A stretch of DNA of 64,000 nucleotides from Haliotis cracherodii (Eukaryota), in assembly GCF_022045235.1 (NCBI RefSeq), contig NW_027266264.1, forward strand, positions 11,966,001 through 12,030,000, read 5' to 3'. Under the pieces are notes generated by a model. The model was not told where the DNA came from, ran no database searches, and saw only the letters and a program-made list of their open reading frames with translations. Below, in pieces: positions 8,876 to 36,183 of this stretch; within the stretch, counting starts at the first letter, position 1, and the number at the start of each line of letters is the position of its first letter. Made by a program: the position numbers and the translations under genes.

Positions 8876-9393
8876 CACGGGTACTACAGACATGTACCCC
8901 AGTTACTTTCGGTATACAGAAAAGTACCCTTACCAAAATCAGAACGTTTTCCAGTACGCAAAATGAGTGATGAGTCTGTATTCCTCAAACCAAAACTGGT
9001 TCATGCTGTAGTTCTGGATCGCCTTTCTGATTTTAAATGCATGTTGTGCATCGCTGAATTACAGTACGTACAGCACTGAGCACAAAACTGGTTCATGCTG
9101 TAGTTCTGGATCGCCTTTCTGATTTTAAATGCATGTTGTGCATCGCTGAATTACAGTACGTACAGCACTGAGCATGCTGAGTGCTAGCTTTTATATGACA
9201 CACTGGAGTGCATCTCATACAAGAGGATGATAGTTCCGATTCAGAATATGCTTATGAGAAATCTCTTCTACGCAAGCGTGCAAAGAACCAGTTGAACACA
9301 CTTATCCCAGGATACAGTTCTGTATTCTGATTTTTGTTAGGGTACATATCTGTATATGAAAAAGTACCTGAGTACATATTTGTAGTACCAGTG
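8876..9393. mobile_element. MITE with ~65-bp imperfect TIRs and CAC...GTG termini
   Basis: GGTACTACAGACATGTACCCCAG...AAAATCAGAA is inverted relative to TTCTGATTTT...GTACATATTTGTAGTACC; contains a 92-bp tandem duplication (8991-9082, 9083-9174). Confidence 0.8.
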
Positions 9394-14734: not shown

Positions 14735-17385
14735 TCATGCCACTGCTTGAACTTTGTCATAGCACTGTTCTAACCTTGTCCTGTCCTCATGACACTGTTC
14801 TAACCATGTCCTGTCTTCATGACATTGTCTTCATGTCACTGTCCTAACCTTGTCCTGTCTTCATGGCACTGTCCTTACCATGTCCTGTCTTCATGACACT
14901 GTCCTTACCATGTCCTGTCTTCATGTCACTGTCCTTACCATGTCCTGTCTTCATGACACTGTCCTTACCTTGTCCTATCCTCATGACACTGTCCTTACAA
15001 TGTCTATCTTCATGACACTGTCCATACCTTGTCCTATCCTCATGACACTGTCCTTACCATGTCTATCTTCATGACACTGTCCATACCTTGTCCTGTCATC
15101 ATGGTACTGTCCTTACCTTGTCCTATCCTCATGACACTGTCCTTACAATGTCTATCTTCATGACACTGTCCATACCTTGTCCTATGCTCATGACACTGTC
15201 CTTACCATGTCTATTTTCATGACACTGTCCATACCTTGTCCTGTCATCATGGTACTGTCCTTACCTTGTCCTATCATCATGACACTGTTCTAACCTCGTC
15301 CTGTCTTCATTGCACTGTTCTAACCTTGTCCTGTCGTCATGACACTGTTCTAACCTTGTCCTGTCATCATGGCACTGTTTTAACCTTGTCCTGTCTTCAT
15401 GGCACTGTCCTTACCATGTCCTGTCCTCATGACACTGTCCTTACCATGTCCTGTCTTCATGACACTGTCCTTACCATGTCCTGTATTCATGTCACTGTCC
15501 TTACCATGTCCTGTCTTCATGACACTGTCCTTACCTTGTCCTATCCTCATGACACTGTCCGTACAATGTCTATCTTCATGACACTGTCCATACCTTGTCC
15601 TATCCTCATGACACTGTCCTTACCATGTCTATCTTCATGACACTGTCCATACCTTGTCCTGTCATCATGGTACTGTCCTTACCTTGTCCTATCATCATGG
15701 CACTGTTCTAACCTTGTCCTGTCGTCATGACACTGTTCTAACCTTGTCCTGTCATCATGGCACTGTTTTAACCTTGTCCTGTCTTCATGGCACTGTCCTT
15801 ACCATGTCCTGTCCTCATGACACTGTCCTTACCATGTCCTGTCCTCATGTCACTGTCCTAACCTTGTCCTGTCTTCATGAAACTGTCCTTACCTTGTCCT
15901 GTCGACATGACACTGTCCTTACCTTGTCCTGTCGTCATGACACTGTTCTAACCTTGTCCTATCATCATGGCACTGTTTTAACCTTGTTCTGTCTTCATGA
16001 CACTGTCCTTACCATGTCCTGTCTTCATGACACTGTCCTTACCATGTCCTGTCTTCATGGCACTGTCCTTACCATGTCCTGTCTTCATGGCACTGTCCTC
16101 ACCTTGTCCTGTCTTCATGACACTGTCCTTACCATGTCCTGTCTTCATGGCACTGTCCTTACCATGTCCTGTCATCATGACACTGTCCTTACCATGTCCT
16201 GTCTTCATGACACTGTCCTTACCTTGTCCTGTCTTCATGACACTGTCCTTACCATGTCCTGTCCTCATGACACTGTCCTTACCATGTCCTATCATCATGG
16301 CACTGTCCTAACCTTGTCCTGTCATCATGACACTGTCCTTACCATGTCCTGTCTTCATGACACTGTCCTAACCTTGTCCTGTCTTCATGACACTGTCCTT
16401 ACCATGTCCTGTCTTCATGGCACTGTCCTTACCATGTCCTGTCATGGCACTGTCCTTACCTTGTCCTGTCATCATGGCACTGTTTTAACCTTGTCCTGTC
16501 ATCATGACAATGTCCTTACCATGTCCTGTCTTCATGACACTGTCCTTACCATGTCCTGTCTTCATGGCACTGTCCTTACCATGTCCTGTCATCATGACAC
16601 TGTCCTTACCATGTCCTGTCTTCATGGCACTGTCCTTACCTTGTCCTATCATCATGACACTGTCCTTACCATGTCCTGTCTTCATGACACTGTCCTTACC
16701 ATGTCCTGTCATCATGACACTGTCCTTACCATGTCCTGTCATCATGACACTGTCCTTACCATGTCCTGTCTTCATGGCACTGTCCTTACCTTGTCCTATC
16801 ATCATGACACTGTCCTTACCATGTCCTGTCTTCATGACACTGTCCTTACCATGTCCTGTCTTCATGACACTGTCCTTACCATGTCGTGTCTTCATGGCAC
16901 TGTCCTTACCATGTCCTGTCATCATGACACTGTCCTTACCTTGTCCTATCATCATGACACTGTCCTTACCATGTCCTGTCATCATGACACTGTCCTTACC
17001 ATCTCCTGTCTTCATGACACTGTCCTTACCATGTCCTGTCTTCATGACACTGTCCTTACCATGTCCTGTCTTCATGACACTGTCCTTACCATGTCCTGTC
17101 TTCATGACACTGTCCTTACCATGTCCTGTCCTCATGTCACTGTCCTTACCATGTCCTGTCTTCATGACACTGTCCTTACCATGTCCTGTCTTCATGTCAC
17201 TGTCCTTACCATGTCCTGTCTTCATGACACTGTCCTTACCATGTCCTGTCCTCATGTCACTGTCCTAACCCTGTGCTGTCGTCATGACGCTGTTCTAACC
17301 TTGTCCTAACCTTTTGCTGTTGTCATATCACTGTTCTTACTACTGTTTGCACCTTGTCCTCACCTTGTCATGGCACTGTTCTGAC
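14735..17385. repeat. 30-bp minisatellite (~85-90 units), consensus CATGACACTGTCCTTACCATGTCCTGTCTT, in MRTO4 intron 3
   Basis: Directly visible; occasional 29- and 27-bp units; degenerate at both edges. Confidence 0.98.
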
Positions 17386-21067: not shown

Positions 21068-21398
21068 CAAGCCTCAGTATTCAGCATCACAGTGTTGTCA
21101 TTGGTTACTTTGGGAATGACGCTTGGTTAAACAAGCCTCAGTATTCAGCATCACAGTGTTGTCATTGGTTACTTTGGGAATGACGCTTGGTTAAACAAGC
21201 CTCAGTATTCAGCATCACAGTGTTGTCATTGGTTACTTTGGGAATGACGCTTGGTTAAACAAGCCTCAGTATACAGCATCACAGTGTTGTCATTGGTTAC
21301 TGTGGGAATGATGCTTGGTTAAACAAGCCTCAGTATTCAGCATCACAGTGTTGTCATTGGTTACTGTGGGAATGACGCTTGGTTAAACAAGCCTCAGC
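21068..21398. repeat. 64-bp minisatellite, 5 copies plus a partial, in MRTO4 intron 7
   Basis: AAGCCTCAG recurs at 21069, 21133, 21197, 21261, 21325 and 21389. Confidence 0.96.
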
Positions 21399-25513: not shown

Positions 25514-25842
25514 CACAATTTCGACATAATAAGCGGCCAGGGCGCTCTCAAAAGAATATTAGAATATTATTTTGGTGAAAAAAACAATGTTGAAAGATAA
25601 ATTTCGTGGTTTATGCTGACAGCCTGAAATATTTATGTACGATAGATATATTTTTCCAGAATTAAATGCCCATAATCAAGGGTGCATATAACACACGAGT
25701 GCGTATTATACGCTAATAAATAAGACTTTTGTACTTTGATCAATCGGAAGGGGTGCTAATTGGGATTTTTCACTTGCCAATATCTTAGCAAATGTCGCGT
25801 TGGGCGCTTATTAGTGCGTGGCGCTTATTACGTCGATTATGG
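25514..25842. mobile_element. Tc1/mariner-type MITE
   Basis: GACATAATAAGCG / CGCTTATTACGTC inverted ends, TA at the right flank; reverse-complement homologue of 63768-64000. Confidence 0.8.
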
Positions 25843-25969
25843 TAGGTCAAGTCTGAATAACAGATCTGATCAGGTCACATGATTTGTTTACTCATGTTAT
25901 CAACCACTAGTCTGCCTGGCCAAGATTTTATTTATCATGTGATTGCCTGCATGTTGTAGTGAGTATTTC

Positions 25970-26184
25970 AGTGGTTCAAATCCTGGCTGCATCATACCAA
26001 AAGCAATGACTGGTCAGTTCAGAATCAGAAAACTGTCTGACTGGGGTATCCATGTTAAACTGCGGCATGGTATCTCAGAGGGCTAGCACTATAAAACCAG
26101 TATTGGTCCGGATTAGTGCACACACGCATGTACGTCACACCTCTGTGGACGTGTACTTACGACAAAATCAGCATTCACTCCCTC
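25970..26184 (+). mobile_element. SINE family D, degenerate copy
   Basis: CATGTTAAACTGCGGCATGGTATCTCAG...GCTAGCACTATAAA shared with ~18240-18285. Confidence 0.75.
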
Positions 26185-26194
26185 TGTTACTGAA

Positions 26195-26427
26195 GAAGAC
26201 CCGGGTTCGAATTGGCCTTTAGCAACCCATGCTTACAGTAAAAGGCAACTAACGGGATAGGCTGGTCAGGCTGACAGACTTGGTTGATGCATGTCATTGT
26301 ATCCCAATTGCGTGGCTCGATGCTCATGTCAATCACTGAGTTGTCTGGTCTAGAGTCGATTATTTACAGAAGTCCATCATATAGCTGGAAAGTTGCTGAG
26401 TGCTGCGTTAAACAACACACAAACAAA
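26195..26427 (+). mobile_element. SINE-like family B
   Basis: Same core; 10-bp TSD TGTTACTGAA (26185-26194, 26428-26437). Confidence 0.88.
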
Positions 26428-26469
26428 TGTTACTGAACAGAGCATTATACTGGAGTTACAAAACACAGA

Positions 26470-29400
26470 GGGAAGGATGACAATACACCAGACTTTATTC
26501 CTCACGAACACATGACATTCATGAAATGATCCGATGCTACAGACAGGAAATAATCTGTACATCTACAACGGGGACTACAAAATAAGAAGAATCAATGGCT
26601 GCTGTAGGTGCAACAGAAAGAGGGTCCTCCCTGCCGCCTCCCACCACACGCGCGGGGACCGGAGGGAGGACCCTTGTCCTGCCAGGTAGTTCAGTTAACA
26701 CAGTCGGAGCAAGAACATATGTACTGTCATTACAATCAAAACTGCAGATATGATGAACGTAGCAATAACACTATGTGAGAGGCTCACCTAGGGTGACTAC
26801 GAATGGCCCCCTTGGACAGGGCTGGTGGCGCAAGATGGCGCTGTGGTTTCCTGGCGTCTCAAACCAACCAGCTCTGACGCAAAGGAGCCAGGAGTACAGA
26901 TGTAGTCAGGTCATTCTCCAATCGCACACAATTAACACATAATCCAAATACAGTAATCATATGAGATCAACAGCCCATTCCAGCCAACAAGCCTCGTAGT
27001 ATTATCACCATGTACAAGAATAAGATACCCGTTTAGTTTCCAAGATGGCGTCCAGGGTGGCCCAAGAGCATGCTTACAATATCCACAGAGAAAGCTGGTC
27101 GCTCTCATTTAGCTACAGCAGGAAGATGTGTGAGTTTGTTACTTAATGTGCAGTGAGAAGATACAATACCTATCAAAATAGGGATGAAGTATAACAAAGC
27201 AATATCTTTGTAATCTGTTGAAGCAAATCACCGGTGTCAACTTGATCACAATATGCTACTGAATGTATTACTGATGACAGTTTGGAATGGTTGGTTGCCC
27301 TTCAACAATACTTTCTCCAAAGGAATTAAGGAATGTTTGACGACTCTCCAATCTGTTAATTGTAAGATGAAATAGCTGGGAAAATTGACAAGAGTTTATA
27401 TGCTACAATGCAGAGATCTAACAAGATGGCACTTTCATGACTTGACTCTGGTTGGTTCTCTACCTCATTAACCATTTGGCACTCTGAGAAATGAAGTTAT
27501 TTTCCTTCCATGCTTGCTTTGTCTGAGTTTTGTTGACTTCAAAGTAAGTAGAACATGCTACAATGGCACCAACATGAGGGCCACACTGTATACATCCCAG
27601 ATCCGGTGTGTACACAGGGTGCACCCTCAATGTCGAACCGTTTCAACTCAACATTGTTTCATCACTGGCGACCCTGGACCCCATCTCTGAAGCTTGTTGG
27701 GAGGAAATAAGCTCAAATATTATCAGAATACTGTTATTTATGAACTTGAAACATACAATATGTGAAAACAATGGCAATTGTATATATAATATGTATATAT
27801 ATTTATACGTATATATGGGATGTAAATTTTTACATATAGTTTTGAGGCAAGGTTGAAATCCACTGTTAGAATGTTGCATATGTGATGAGAAAGAAAATAT
27901 GCCTTTGAAAGTTTAACAAAATTCTTGCAGCCAGTAAAGTGGGACATGTTCTCATATGCCAATGTTTCGAAATGGTCTGGATTTCTGCTCAATAGAGATT
28001 TAACTTGTTCAATGCCCAATACAAAAATCTTCAAAAGTTGCAGAAAAATACATGGATAAAAAGAGGAGAGGACTCAGTCATGAGGCAATAAACAGTGGTT
28101 AAACATCCATCATAGCTCACTGAGAGAGTTATCTCCCTTTAGAAATAAAACAGGGGCAGGCAGGTGGAGTGAAAGCAGATTAAGGGTTCAAAGACAGATT
28201 GGTGCATTGCATATATTTTATCACCCAAATGCACTTGCAACAACAAGGACAAAACTGGCTTGATAATTGCTTTAAAATACATACAGTGAAATGCCTAGGC
28301 ATGATTAGAAAGTAATTCATAAATTAATTAAGCTACAAATATACAATAATTATTCAACAGAAATCAGCAATAATCATTAGCTACAGTTATAAGATTGTGT
28401 CCGAGTGCTAACAGTATGATACATGTACAACAAACCGCACAGTGTGCTGGACTGGCCTTTGGTAAACAATGGACAAACTGCCCACAAATAGTTCATAATT
28501 CCCCACTAATATCCACAAACAGCTACAGCGTGAACCATCATTAGGTAAAACGTGTTTCCTCCAATCAAACTTACATGTTCATCTGAGCATGCCTATGACA
28601 TAATCATCTATTATTCAATTTAATTGTCCCACCAGTCTTTGAAATACCTGAAAATGCCATACACAGTTCAGCTGAATATGCAACATTACGACAGGCTCGA
28701 GAGCCCCATTACAGAACCTGTGAAAACGTACACAGAACAAAGGGTGTTATAATACTTGTCAGGGTCCCCAAACTCATTGATACAGGGGAATAGTATATTT
28801 CTCTGCCCCCAGATTTGAACAGATATTGAGCTATCAGAGGAAACATCATAAGAGTAATACTGAAGGGAAACGGCAGTTATCTCCCTTTGAATGAGTAACA
28901 TGAGCGAGACATATGGCAACAGTGAGAAAAATACCATGAGATATTAACAGGGGTGAAGGTTATTTATGCAAAACAGACTGTTGGTGAACCAACATGAGGT
29001 AGACGCTTAGTGAAACACTTGGAGAGAAAGGTGTATACAAGTATAACTTACTCTTGCAGAATATAACCAGACTGGCTGATCTCCATAACAACAAAATAAA
29101 TAGGATATATGTGTAGATATGATACATTCGATGAGGAAATCTGAGTGTTTCTAAATGATGCAAACCCAACTACCTTCTCATCATATTAACCAGTGTTGGA
29201 TGTGGTCCTCCGACCCAAGGTTTGACAGAAGCATATTTTGCAGTCGTTGAGAGTGGTAGGGTTGCCTTGGTAATGAGCTCTGGATGAAGTTATGTTTAAT
29301 ATCCCCTGAGTAGAAAATCGTAACAAGATGAAAGGTGATGAAGATGGCTTTGGAGTGTTTCAAATTCCTTCCATGAATGTACACCAATACACAACATATG

Positions 29401-31174
29401 TTTCATGACAAGAGGCTGAATGAACATGAACACCAAATCAAATATTTCACTTCCTTCTAAATGAATACCTAATCAAATAGTTACTAGCTGAAGATTTAGA
29501 ATTTGGACCGTTTCTCCCTCCATTCAGCCTCTCACTATCTGGTTGCAATTCCTCGTACAAGCATAATACATCTTATGCTAAAGGGAAAGGAAGAGGTGCG
29601 TAGGGGGAGACAATCAGCACAATACAACAGAAAAGATTAAAGCTTGAGAAATCAACAAATTATTGTAAGTCAATTGAGACGTGCACAAAGTGCTGAATCA
29701 TTGCATATTATCATCTCGGATTTGAACAACATTTTCAAATCTGGTAGACAGTGGCTATACAGTAAGCATCTACAAGTAATGACAAATTAATTAATAATGA
29801 ATTATGAGCACCGAGGAGAGGAATCATAAATTATAGTAACACTCATTATACCTATTCGGTATAAAGTCATAACAATTAGCTGACCAGGCAAGCTAAAAAT
29901 CAACATAAATTAAATGGCTAAACTACGACTACACATGCTAAAAGCCAAGTTATATGCAGCAGATAGGGTAACAAATGGCTCTCATCACTCTGTGTTGAGC
30001 TGTTCACTTCATCTGTTGTTCTCTACACCTTGCGAAATGGTAAGGCTACGTTTCCTATCTCCCAACTAAGTCCTGTGACTGATAACATATCTTTGGTCAG
30101 GATGTGTACTCCCGTGCCCGAATCATGCCTTCCCCATTTCACAGAGCATACAAAGGACAGCTATGCAGCACTAATTGGTGTAATTCATCTCCAAAACAAT
30201 ACTGATGTTAAAATGAAAATCATGTGTTTTCAACCTGAGCTTAACAATAAAAATCATGATTCCTTATGCATCAACCTGTGCATACAACACAAAGAACTCT
30301 ATGGGACTCCCATCAATAGTTTCGGCATGCAGCGCAGCTAAAGCTTGACTCTGCTACAATGTTACAGTGACTGGACCACAAGCTATATGTTCTCTCCCTG
30401 CAGGGAGCTAAGTTGACAACGGCTGTACCACAGGTTCCTGAAACCAGGAAGGACTAGGAGCACCTCAGTATTATAGTCCATGGACGCCAACTTGTGTACA
30501 TCTGTCCGAAGTGCCGGCCAACATGGGAAGATCATGAGGTAGTTAGATGACCTCTCAAGGTCACATCAGGGAGTCAACATGTGCCAAGCAGAAGATGAAC
30601 ATCCATCCGATGAGGCACGTGATAAAGTCCATACATTTTCCTTTCAGCCTCTTATGCCCACAGGGAACGCTGCTTTCTTGCACAGTTCAGGTTGTGTCTG
30701 TTATGGCTCTGCTACGTTTGTAACCAATTACATCACCAATGACACAGTGAATGTTCAGAGTGTGGCAAAATGATTGGAAAAAACAACTTGTTCAACAACA
30801 GTGAAACTAACATACCAACATCTGTGAACTGATTCAGATGGTCTTGGTGGACTAGTTAAATGGCATATCCTGCGCATAGTGCCCATATTTACATATATAT
30901 TATATCTAACATAATCTTTATACAGGATTAAATAACCTAGAATCTTAACAGATACAATCAAAACATGAAATAATGGTGAAACTGTGGAGTAACTGCAAGA
31001 ATCTGAATCACATGGTCAATGGTGCATACCAAATCTACATCGACTACCAAGACATTCTCGGCAGCCTTATCACTGTTACAAGTCCATTGCAGAATCACAG
31101 GATGAACATGGCGTGTCCAAGCATATTATGACAGACATACTATAAGCAAGCCATAACAGACAGTGCTTGACAGT
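26470..31174 (-). other. hb: Probable ~4.7 kb 3'UTR of hunchback
   Basis: The first canonical AATAAA I found on the minus strand after the stop is at 26499-26494; interval lacks recognisable TEs and has many miRNA seed matches; the end is inferred. Confidence 0.6.
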
Positions 31175-33358
31175 TTAGTTGTGTGCAGCTCTTGCGATGT
31201 GGAGGAAGAACTCCACCTTGTCCTTACTGCAGTGACCGCACATGTTGCACTTGTAAGGATCTTGGTAACCATGGTAACCCATGTGCATGGTGTACATGAC
31301 ACAGTCCCGGAATGCTATCTCACAGTAGTGACACTCAAAACTGTCAGCACCACGGAAGGGCTTCGTCTTGCTGTGGTTGAGAGCATTTAGGGACAGTTCG
31401 CTTGGAAGAGTGAGGGACTTGTCTGTCCTCAGTGGATGCAGTCCATTGGGGGGATTCTCTAACACAATTTCCCCATTCTGCACTGGGGCACCATCTGGTC
31501 CAGAGTCCTGCAGGATCTTCCATGCCAGTTCAGCTCCACGTCTCAGTGCAGATGTCATTGGTGGCTTCTGATGCCTCATGTACTCTGAAATCATGCGGGG
31601 CTTGCCTTCGTAATCTTTGGGCATATCGGCTTTGTTCATACCATTGTCAGGGCTTGGAGTCTCTCTTTGATCATTATTCTCAAAATTACTGTGACTGTCT
31701 CCATTGGGACTCTGGGGTTCTGGTTTTATGCCACTGTTAAGTATTTTCAAATTTTCGTGAATTTGTTCAAAGTCATTTTTATGTGTGACAGGGCTGGATG
31801 TAAGACCGTTTGCCATGTCTTCATCACCTTTGTGTGGAGGTGAAAATTTTCCTCTTTCAACCTTAAGCGAGCCTGGGCTTTCTCCTCTTCCATTTGGGCT
31901 ACCTTCAACTGACTGTGTTCTGGTTTCAGTAACATATTCTTGTGGAGGAACTTCACTGCTAGATTCTTCACTTTCACTATCATAGGGAGAACCAGATTGC
32001 TTCTCTTGGAGTTTGAGACACAAAGTGTCTAACTTGTATGCCTTGCCCTTGCGAGATCTCTTCCTAGGACTAGGTACTGCATTTTCTGTGGAGTCATTAC
32101 TTGAAGGGACATCAACTTCTTGGAATGGTCTCTTGATTGGCATCAGAGGTGTGTCATGAGGGAGAATATGATGCATACCACTCAAAGGTGAGTAGGCTGG
32201 TGGGGAGACTGATTTTGGTTTTGTGAGATCGAGTGGGGACTCTTTGCGTATCCTTGGAGTTACAGCACTACCACCACCACCAAACTTCAAGGTCATCTGT
32301 TTAAGAATGTCAGCACCTTCTACAGGCTCTTGAGGAGAAGTAGGATCCTGTCCATTTCTGGAGGAATATGCCAACTCAGGAAGGCTGCGACTGGTGTTTG
32401 GTTGATGTGGGTGACCGCCTAGCTGGTTAGCAGGCCATGAATGAGGACTGGTTTTGCTGGGGGTACTGCCTTGGTCAGTTTGGACATGGAGCATGGTATT
32501 GTGCCTTGATGTAGGAGTGACTACTCTGTCTGGTTTTGTCAAAGACCGTTGGCGAGCAAGGTGAGCTTTGAGATTTTGTTCATCCAACAGAGCTTCTGAA
32601 GAAATCCCAAACATGCTGAAGAGGTCCTGGTTTTCTCCAGCAGCATGAACCTTCAACACATGGGCATGGAGACCTTCTGGTGAATCTGCCTTGAAACTGC
32701 ACAAATTGCACTTTGTAGAGCCAGGCTCACCTTTGCTGTATTTTCCAGGGGATGATGATTGTGGTGACTGTGGAGGCCTCATCTGCCCAGGCATGTTGTT
32801 GACAGGTATGAGAGGTGGGGGTGGTTGCATACCATTCAGCAGAGGCCAGTAGGGAGCCATGAGGCCACTGTTCAACCCTGGATGCATGCCTGGCATGGAG
32901 GACTGAGGTAGGTGGAATAGAGGACTCATGAACTGGTCCATCTTGTCCTTTCTAGGACCTCGTGGTCCTCTTGGTGGGCCTCTCTTTGCCAGAAGTGATA
33001 AACCAGAGGTTTCTGGTTCCAGGCCTTGAGGCAAGCTCCCATCTGCATTTAATACTGCTGCAGGCTTGTGGTTATACTTCTTCAGGTGGAGTTTGAGACT
33101 ATGGCAATACTTAGTGGCGTAGGTGCAGTCTGCACAACGATACTGATACACATTGGTATGGGATTTCATGTGGCTGTTGAGCATGGATTTGTTGACACAT
33201 GAATAATTACATTTGTTGCACTTGAATGGCTTGGAGCCGAAATGATTACGAAGATGATATTCCAGATGATGTTTGTACTCTGTGACAAACGGACATCGTG
33301 GGCACTGGAGCAGCTTCTCCTCCTTGATGTGGCTGCGGGAGTGTTGCCAGAAGTCCAC
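31175..33358 (-). CDS. hb: hunchback, last coding exon
   Basis: [12 protein letters not shown]...[49 protein letters not shown]...[23 protein letters not shown] is the diagnostic hunchback finger block; basic box [12 protein letters not shown]; two C-terminal fingers; TAA at 31177-31175. Confidence 0.97.
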
Positions 33359-33759: not shown

Positions 33760-34087
33760 TCAGAAGAGAAGGCAACAATGTTGCATAAATGGAAGGGTAA
33801 TAAATAAAATTACATAGGTGACGGTAAAAGGATGAGCCTGGTAATGCCTTGGTTAACCGTTTGTTTCAGTTTCTGCTTAGCAAAACACTGAATGGTAGAA
33901 AAAGATATTTTTAATGACACCATTGATATTAAACAATTTTGAAAATCATCTGTCCGATCTTAAGAAAACAATTCAACTGAGATAATTAGAGAATTTTTTT
34001 AAAGAAATATCAACTTTCACTTTTCGAAATATATCTTATAACCACTTTGACATTTCAACTGACATTGCATCTGGTGAGAGAACATAC

Positions 34088-34311
34088 CTTAGTAGTAGAA
34101 GCAAAGCTGCACTGCTTGCACCGATACACTTTAGGTCTGCCAGGCTGCATCCTCTGCATCTTAGCAGTTCCAAAGCCGTCTGAATCACTGGAGTGGAAGT
34201 CTTTGATATGTCGCTTGAGTCTCCCCTCAGTTCGAGAAGTGTAGTCACAGTGTGGGCAACTGTACTCAAAGTGAATGCTCATGTGAGCATCAAAGTCATC
34301 TTTGCATTTTG
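34088..34311 (-). CDS. hb: hunchback, middle coding exon
   Basis: ttccag|; (A)KCKDDFDAHMSIHFEYSCPHCDYTSRTEGRLKRHIKDFH...PKVYRCKQCSFASTTK; donor gtatgt; phases 1/0 fit the neighbours. Confidence 0.94.
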
Positions 34312-35227
34312 CTGGAAAAAGGAAAAGCGACAATGAAGATTTCACATACTTTTGAGGCGAATAATTAATGCCGGAAAATAAACTCCCTGTAAAATTCATA
34401 TGAACTAAATCACCTCCAATCTGTTCTTTGTAACATATTTCTTGTCATGTTAAGACTGGTTGCCCGAAGTGAATTAATCTCCCTTAACATGCTACCACAC
34501 AAGCTGTCTAAACTGTACTAGACATGAAAAGACAAACATATTAAGTAATGCTGTCAGTGACACCAACACCTAGACAATCATGGATGTAATCTTCTCTGCT
34601 GACTTAATGCAAGGGGCTGCTCCATCCGAACTGGAGGACACCTTATTGATTAATGTGTGCAGCTTATGCTTACAAACCACGTCAAGGCCATACTTCTAAC
34701 ACTCCACAGTCACAAAACATGCTAATAACCATCACATTTTCATAACTCGATGTGAAATTGGATCTACATTCTGTCTAAATCGAAGAAAAAAGTAGATCAG
34801 TTTTATAAGGAAAAGTCATGACATTATCCTTCTTTGAAAAGAATCAATAAGATGTACAGTAATTCTTAACACAATATTTACACATTAAGCTATGATTTTG
34901 AAACGGGTTATTACAACCTCAAAAGATTTCCAAGATATTTTATTACCTGCTGTCATGACATTTTCAGTAGGACTGGGTATTTAGGAAGGATTCTTAATCT
35001 TACACAGTGACCACTAATATCTATAGGGAAACATTCCAGCTGTAAATTAGTTCCTTAATGCCTCAACAATTCAAATAAAAAAAGGAAATAATAAGAAAAA
35101 CAATAAGACCCAGTGTCCATATGCTCTGCCTTTAAGTTTTAATAATAGCATAACAATTAAACCTAAGAATTTGAAACTAAGCTGTGATATCAAACATATT
35201 TAACAGATGACTGTGTATTTCCCTCAC

Positions 35228-36183
35228 CTGAAAAGCTGCACAGATGACAGAAGTAGAGTCCTGTTTGTTTTGAGTAAGAGTTGAAAGTTGGAGAGGAGGG
35301 GTCTATAGACCTGGGGTTGGATGTCAGTGAGAATCGTCTGTTTCCAAGGTAACCAGGAGAAGCTAGGGGGGTGGAGGTAATTCCATGGAAGGAGTAGTTC
35401 TTGTAGTCTTCTGGTAGGAGATGCTCAGAGTTAGACTCGTTCAAGCCTGACCTGAGCCCTTCAGTAGAACTGTCCTCATCTGAATGGTAGGAGTCATTAA
35501 AGGAGCTGTTCAGATGAGATGTGTTCTGGGTCCCTTCATCCTGTTCTTGGGAGAATGACCCGTTGAGCACCAATTCCCCCTCTCTGCTGTCAGCTTCCCT
35601 TGTCAGTGAAGGTCCATCTGGATTAGCTTCACAATGTTTGTTGTACAAAGGGCTTCCTGACTCTTCCTTCCTTGGGTAAGGTGGCTCCTCTGTCACTTGG
35701 TCCTCCTCTGAAGGACGAGCATTGCCATAGAATGAGGTCGGAGCAGGGTGCTCAAGATCTGCCGCCTTGTAGCTGTTGTGGAATGATGGGTGCCCTGGTT
35801 TTCTGTCCGGCTCCTCTTCGTCCTTGTGAACCTTAGAGTCCGGGTTGGGAAGGTTGGAACTGTCAGTCTCTTCTCTACGGTAGCTGAACTTGTCACTGGG
35901 AGTCAGCGGGTGACTGTACTGGGGGCTTGAGTCCGACTGTTCCGAATCTCTCCTGGAATAAGTGGAGTCCGGGTAGGAGCAGAAGCTGTTCTGGTGGTAT
36001 AGGTTACTCAGCAGGGGCAGACCTGCATGTGCTTCATCTTTGTCCTGGCTATGGTTGGAGTAAGCAGCAGACTGGTTATGTGCAGTGTAGTGTGGACTCG
36101 TCTCCTCGTGGTTCACTAGACCGGACTCGGCTGACATCACCTTCTCAAGAACATCCGCCACCTTGGGTGAAATAGCATCACTC
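35228..36183 (-). CDS. hb: hunchback, first identifiable coding exon (first in-frame ATG at 36137, MSAESG...)
   Basis: Acceptor tttcag| at 36184; long S/P/E-rich ORF ending LYFCHLCSFS; donor G|gtgagg joins the next exon to complete a C2H2 finger. Confidence 0.88.

Follow-up and report, generated by a model that had tools for sequence, protein, structure and literature searches.

Is the control of hunchback (hb) by the microRNA (miRNA) let-7 a nematode peculiarity or part of an old bilaterian circuit? This question is raised by a minus-strand gene in a window of 64,000 nucleotides (nt) of the north-east Pacific abalone Haliotis cracherodii (contig NW_027266264.1), the window being the whole stretch of DNA that was analysed. 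The link between let-7 and hb is a textbook case of heterochronic regulation, and it is established only in Caenorhabditis. The gene in the window is the Haliotis ortholog of hb, and its 3' untranslated region (3'UTR) carries two perfect let-7 8mer sites (Table 1). On balance, we favour the reading in which let-7 targets abalone hb mRNA directly, by way of these two seed-only 8mers, and the mRNA would be repressed as let-7 increases late in larval life. With two let-7 8mers present in a supported hb 3'UTR of a mollusc, the question becomes open to direct tests, in farmed animals (abalone, oysters) with staged larvae.

At both let-7 sites the plus strand reads TGAGGTAG, which is CUACCUCA in the minus-strand mRNA, and both combine a perfect match to miRNA nucleotides 2-8 with an A opposite position 1. 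The original prediction, made from the sequence of the window, had named these two words together with one miR-125/lin-4 and one miR-100 seed match; all four were found again where it had placed them, on the sense strand of the gene, and base 30543 is the T that it gave. In 5000 dinucleotide-preserving shuffles of the 4697-nt 3'UTR, the mean number of let-7 8mers was 0.061, and two or more copies, as observed, arose with a probability of 0.0018. This agrees with the earlier expectation of about 0.07 copies and with the claim that two such 8mers are unlikely by chance. Among 39 conserved miRNA seeds, let-7 is the sole seed with two 8mers in the 3'UTR. The coding sequence (CDS) has a further let-7 8mer on the sense strand, the third, so that three of the four plus-strand copies in the window fall in the last hb exon. 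The possibility that this third copy is part of the conserved DGSLPQG motif was ruled out, as the 8mer encodes LPQ in a variable, poorly conserved stretch.

Table 1. Positions of the hb gene, of words in its 3'UTR, of the miRNA genes and of seed matches in hb flanks of other animals. Plain numbers are window positions; C4 is the contig of the genome that carries these miRNA genes; L numbers denote metagenome loci, with distances (nt) after the hb stop codon; UTR distances are likewise counted from the stop codon.
Feature	Position	Strand	Details
hb last coding exon	31175..33355	-	726 codons, with stop codon at 31175-31177; includes four middle and two C-terminal zinc fingers
hb exon with N-terminal zinc fingers	34085..34318	-	tblastn with H. 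rufescens protein residues 334-411, 98.7%; Pfam zinc-finger matches
hb N-terminal coding exon, low-complexity, Ser/Pro-rich	35223..36182	-	tblastn residues 18-337, 99%
Possible hb first exon	near 55137-55027	-	weak tblastn match
hb 3'UTR, about 4.7 kb (4697 nt), single-copy	26478..31174	-	contigs of X1, X5 and X12 continuous with CDS
Pumilio-type element UGUAAAUA, single copy	30886..30893	-	UTR +282
let-7 8mer site 1, CUACCUCA	30535..30542	-	UTR +633; let-7 duplex -16.6 kcal/mol; seed-only pairing; flank AU 0.48
miR-125 7mer-m8 match CUCAGGG (plus strand CCCTGAG)	29304..29310	-	UTR +1865; followed by G, so not an 8mer; immediately upstream of ATTAAA at 29300
let-7 8mer site 2, CUACCUCA	28995..29002	-	UTR +2173; duplex -16.1 kcal/mol; flank AU 0.58
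miR-100 7mer-A1 match ACGGGUA (plus strand TACCCGT)	27026..27032	-	UTR +4143
Sole AAUAAA poly(A) signal in hb 3'UTR	26494..26499	-	putative RNA contigs end 6-16 nt downstream
Third sense-strand let-7 8mer, in CDS	32904..32911	-	codons Leu-Pro-Gln of FHLPQSS
miR-100 gene	C4:28674690-28674761	-	355 nt upstream of let-7; mature sequence AACCCGUAGAUCCGAACUUGUG
let-7 gene	C4:28674257-28674335	-	Rfam 55.3 bits against cut-off of 53.5; canonical mature sequence UGAGGUAGUAGGUUGUAUAGUU
miR-125 candidate	C4:28651079-28651100	-	UCCCUGAGACCAUAACUUGUGC in 5' arm of hairpin; -36.3 kcal/mol, z -2.4; 23 kb downstream of let-7
let-7 8mers, 4 clusters	L005 +2968, L016 +115, L043 +1279, L071 +399		
miR-125 8mers, 3 clusters	L005 +2130, L009 +164, L020 +537		
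miR-100 8mers, 4 clusters	L022, L027, L055, L021		

That the sites lie in hb mRNA is suggested by the contigs of three small, probably transcriptomic runs, X1, X5 and X12, which come from three studies with three organism codes and whose contigs total 88-116 Mb per run, a size that resembles a transcriptome. In each of them, one to three contigs span 26478/26488 to 31500, unbroken from the CDS, and end just past the sole AATAAA of the stretch. The DNA-sized run X15 (a contig set of 1040 Mb) continues past that point to 26398, where high-copy repeats start. Beyond 31500, the X15 contig stops after 2.2 kb, within an intron, and the contigs of X1 and X12 extend for 3.7 kb, about what a spliced mRNA with a 5'UTR of approximately 650 nt would give when the CDS length is taken from the tblastn exons. 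The assignment of X1, X5 and X12 to RNA is a guess, and their contigs show neither true ends nor isoform ratios. Taken together, this is good but indirect support for a 3'UTR of about 4.7 kb that holds all four seed matches, as the original prediction had assumed. Contig depth, taken from four runs over 25600-31500, is flat across the 3'UTR at single-copy level, and no repeat family was found in the stretch, which rules out that the seed words sit inside repeats or transposons. A depletion of AATAAA as a hallmark of the UTR was not significant (one observed against 2.0 expected, P = 0.40). Directly downstream of the hb poly(A) site, high-copy repeats begin (25600-26480), with a summed contig depth of 10^3-10^5 times the single-copy level in four of four runs.

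The identity of the gene as hb, likewise part of the original prediction, is borne out by the translation of the open reading frame (ORF), by Pfam and by protein matches. The last exon encodes four consecutive middle zinc fingers with the hb signature, the columns of which are invariant in an alignment of 18 hb proteins, and Pfam C2H2 matches fall at ORF residues 104-153. Two C-terminal zinc fingers stand directly before the stop codon, the same ending as in bivalve, annelid and arthropod hb loci, and the splice acceptor of the exon reads ...TTTTCAG, followed by GTGGAC. The protein encoded by this exon is 100% identical to that of H. cracherodii, 99.4% identical to that of H. rufescens and 92% identical to the 'protein hunchback-like' of Haliotis asinina; further matches are hb of Patella, bivalves, Phoronopsis, Terebratalia, Owenia and Lingula, with arthropod hb coming after these. 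The family assignment was made from the fingers and the best protein matches; the exons were treated separately, and the protein database search used the last exon only. hb is single copy in the 1.18-Gb genome, where the next-best match (E = 1.6e-11) is a generic C2H2 protein. The RefSeq names of the same ortholog vary (P0121, P0128, P0130): it is called 'RE1-silencing transcription factor-like' in H. rufescens, 'uncharacterized protein' in H. cracherodii and 'MECOM-like, LOW QUALITY' in H. rubra, and is named hunchback-like in H. asinina only. Name-based searches would thus miss the gene.

The regulators proposed for these sites are present in the same genome. As expected from the original prediction, miR-100, let-7 and a miR-125 candidate follow one another in this order on one strand of C4. 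The 23-kb gap to the last of them is large, and a single primary transcript is putative. The miR-125 candidate was located with a 22-nt pattern allowing two mismatches; a scan of the genome with the Rfam lin-4 model (RF00052) gave no match, and the candidate scores below every Rfam miRNA model. let-7-5p has been detected in the mantle of H. iris (PMC13544226), and let-7 expression has been reported for Rapana (PMC5714496). In other gastropods, let-7 goes up late in larval life and at metamorphosis. Beside miR-100, palindromic units of about 150-170 nt are arrayed (positions 2541-3051 of L001, a locus on C4), with weak matches to the plant family MIR6140 on both strands.

For a view beyond abalone, a substitute comparison was made in which metagenome contigs were scanned with the alignment of 18 hb proteins. 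The scan returned 80 loci, of which 42 include the hb stop codon; these fall into 29 non-redundant clusters with unrelated flanks, and sites were counted within 3 kb after the stop on what are DNA contigs. By best protein match, the clusters comprise a heterodont bivalve (L005), gutless-oligochaete-like annelids with two hb paralogs, an onychophoran- or chelicerate-like animal (L016), termites, a hymenopteran-like insect and other arthropods. The 8mers for let-7, miR-125 and miR-100 listed in Table 1 sum to 11 against a maximum of five in 1000 shuffles (shuffle means 0.37, 0.29 and 0.39, respectively), a count in which related clusters share sites by descent. The let-7-complex seeds also stand out against random triples of real 8mers in the 29 flanks (p = 0.0016), and the reverse-complement controls occur in one, zero and one flanks. 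The bivalve-like locus (L005:8035-14677) has its best matches in Mactra, Mya and Mercenaria and AATAAA signals at +177, +1414-1613 and +3806. In the locus with best matches in Euperipatoides and Tachypleus (L016:6155-6381), of which only 227 nt of flank are available, the let-7 8mer is accompanied by a miR-125 7mer-m8 at +161. Scans of genome-contig and viral-contig collections with the hb alignment found no relative. In the annelid-like hosts, a second, more divergent hb-like gene was observed (L067, L069, L071 and L074; C-terminus …FFLHLARAPHS), and its copy in L071 is the one with a let-7 8mer in Table 1.

In four unrelated arthropod-like contigs of this set, the miRNA concerned is miR-100. 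L022:10657-11256, L027:3112-3711, L055:1367-1966 and L021:3505-4104 each have two or three miR-100 seed sites 200-520 nt past the stop. The distal one shows long 3' pairing (AAGUUCGGUC.UACGGGUA; AAGTTCGGTC.TACGGGTA), with a duplex energy down to -27.6 kcal/mol, and it is kept amid an otherwise unalignable UTR, which is a signature of selected sites. hb appears to be a conserved target of miR-100 within this arthropod clade, for which we found no earlier report.

Several findings weigh against let-7 targeting of abalone hb. Neither site has 3' supplementary pairing, and the context of site 1 is GC-neutral. let-7 was picked after the 64-kb window had been read, so that the nominal P value is somewhat optimistic. 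The compared runs differ by approximately 0.4-1.1% from the window, with no listed change in the sites, and relatives that are only about 1% diverged are uninformative on site conservation. As the RNA nature of the runs is guessed, the extent of the UTR rests on indirect arguments. In the other animals, the let-7 sites of L005 and L043 come after the first AATAAA, possibly beyond the end of the UTR. The main hb ortholog has no let-7 site in its flank in the nine gutless-oligochaete-like annelid clusters, which makes the let-7-hb link patchy, and four short marine arthropod hb contigs (3' flank of 295-735 nt) have no let-7 site either.

The main rival explanation draws on some of these points. 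It holds that the let-7 8mers and the 7mers for miR-125 and miR-100 occur fortuitously, the UTR being long and AT-rich, and lack a regulatory effect worth selecting for, and we judge it possible rather than probable. By shuffling, at least one site of at least a 7mer has a probability of 0.33 for miR-125 and 0.10 for miR-100, neither of which is beyond chance. Moreover, 316 of the 65,536 possible 8mers (0.5%) are present twice or more in the UTR, the same order of magnitude as in the shuffles, and dozens of conserved seeds were open to notice when let-7 was singled out, at sites that pair through the seed only. Against this stands the shuffling result for a let-7 8mer specified beforehand, in the one gene for which let-7 targeting is predicted a priori, from hbl-1 of C. 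elegans. In other phyla, independent hb flanks show an excess of these three seeds but not of their reverse complements, and two 8mers for an expressed miRNA usually bring about measurable repression. The original prediction of sites for all three miRNAs thus holds for the let-7 8mers and overstates the evidence for the other two in abalone, as these have single weak 7mers within chance. Such 7mers may give weak extra input, indistinguishable from chance.

A further alternative accepts the sites as real and places them mostly outside the prevalent mRNA. Through the main use of a proximal poly(A) signal (one of the ATTAAA variants at 29300 and 28624, or some non-canonical signal), the mRNA would contain just site 1, or both let-7 sites, and the full 4.7 kb would belong to a minor or tissue-specific (e.g. 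neural) form. Two ATTAAA variants do lie inside the UTR at these positions, contigs cannot reveal isoform ratios or true ends, and long neural 3'UTR extensions are common in animals. We nevertheless consider this alternative unlikely, since in three runs the contigs cover all of the 4.7 kb with even depth, each set ending right past the single AATAAA. In addition, let-7 site 1 is upstream of every candidate poly(A) signal, so that at least one 8mer is in every isoform.

It is highly improbable that the TGAGGTAG words are not target sites in hb mRNA and instead belong to a plus-strand feature, such as an antisense transcript or a hairpin resembling let-7: on that strand they match the 5' end of mature let-7 exactly, and a short local hairpin can form around 30535, but no Rfam family matches 26000-31400 on either strand (E<=1), the sequence departs from let-7 beyond 9 nt, and the let-7 gene of this genome is elsewhere, on C4. 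Together with the lack of a repeat family, the lack of an Rfam match indicates that the words are neither transposon-borne nor part of a plus-strand let-7-like gene.

For the direct targeting of hb mRNA by let-7, which we favour, we propose the following hypothetical mechanism, in which (i) Argonaute loaded with let-7 would bind both 8mers through seed pairing, and (ii) the stability and translation of hb mRNA would be lowered wherever let-7 is expressed. From the sites and the late rise of let-7 in other gastropods we infer binding, repression and its timing; a role of hb in larval competence, metamorphosis or neuroblast identity is conjecture. The mechanism would be the molluscan counterpart of the repression of hbl-1 by let-7-family miRNAs in C. 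elegans. It is plausible that abalone hb, as a predicted target, adds to the known regulation of hunchback by let-7. A literature search, which covered subscription papers thinly, gave no earlier account of the let-7 complex targeting hb in a mollusc, annelid or arthropod, and earlier remarks in such papers are possible.

In C. elegans, hbl-1 is repressed through its 3'UTR by let-7-family miRNAs (miR-48/84/241 and let-7) and lin-4 (PMC8063082, PMC3353893, PMC4973599), puf-9 acts on the same UTR, and Pumilio control of the UTRs of hb and hbl-1 is known in fly and worm (PMC1309705, PMC3353893). The miR-100 family (mir-51-56) is genetically upstream of hbl-1 in Caenorhabditis. Abalone hb and hbl-1 share an orthologous transcription factor, a long 3'UTR with several let-7 seed sites, a lin-4/miR-125-type match and a Pumilio-type element. 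The hbl-1 UTR of the worm has about eight let-7-complementary sites, and genetic and reporter proof exists there, whereas abalone hb is known from sequence, with two 8mers and one weak miR-125 7mer. [quoted passage not shown] As far as those parts go, the likeness consists of co-encoded miRNAs from one locus with several sites on one temporal-identity transcription factor, and of an induction at the larval-to-adult transition in the fly. By contrast, the known fly targets do not include hb, only the let-7 sites stand out statistically in abalone, and, with the abalone miR-125 candidate 23 kb away, co-transcription is putative. The Nanos response elements of Drosophila hb (Pumilio/Nanos) resemble the abalone case as post-transcriptional control of hb via the 3'UTR, and the abalone UTR has one UGUAAAUA. 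However, the Drosophila mechanism is protein-based, spatial and maternal, and one Pumilio-type 8mer in 4.7 kb is no evidence for a Nanos response element. In the vertebrate retina, let-7, miR-125 and miR-9 control progenitor competence alongside Ikaros, an Hb-related factor (PMC4973599), so that one timing process there involves these miRNAs together with a zinc-finger temporal factor related to Hb. In contrast to the situation proposed here, the direct link from let-7 to Ikzf1 is speculative in that review, and Ikaros is not a strict hb ortholog. A conservation of the let-7-hb link is raised there only as speculation (PMC4973599).

Whether the regulation is old is a separate matter. We tentatively suggest, while regarding it as somewhat doubtful, that hb repression through the let-7 complex is a timing module inherited from the protostome, possibly the bilaterian, ancestor. 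This module would have persisted for over 500 million years, during which the load-carrying member of the trio was swapped. According to this scenario, let-7 (with miR-125) would act in molluscs, miR-125 in clitellate annelids, the let-7 family with lin-4 in nematodes, and miR-100 in the arthropod clade via two conserved sites with extensive 3' pairing. The interest of the three miRNAs taken together lies at the level of the gene family, where lineages differ in which members of this one miRNA locus their sites match. If true, this would show a target staying under one miRNA locus while individual sites turn over. The original prediction, the observations of which are confirmed, had likewise proposed that repression of hb by the let-7 complex may go back to the protostome ancestor. 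This part of its interpretation is supported by the enrichment of the 8mers in the 29 metagenome-derived flanks, and not by the nine annelid clusters, where the let-7 site is absent, so that the interpretation as a whole is partly supported.

Some further words and repeats were observed in the window. In the distal UTR, CAAGATGGC(G/A) occurs three times within 600 nt (plus strand 26830-26838, 27040-27048 and 27421-27429), where the expectation for a 9mer is about 0.02 copies in 4.7 kb; it is a YY1/Pho-like core on DNA and reads GCCAUCUUG on the mRNA strand. Another word, CAUUGUAGCA, is present three times in the UTR (+816, +3612 and +3767). Tandem arrays elsewhere in the window comprise a 30-nt unit repeated 83 times (14826-17307, 89% matches), a 64-nt unit repeated 5.2 times (21068-21397), and perfect duplications of 485 nt (113-1084) and 92 nt (8991-9174).

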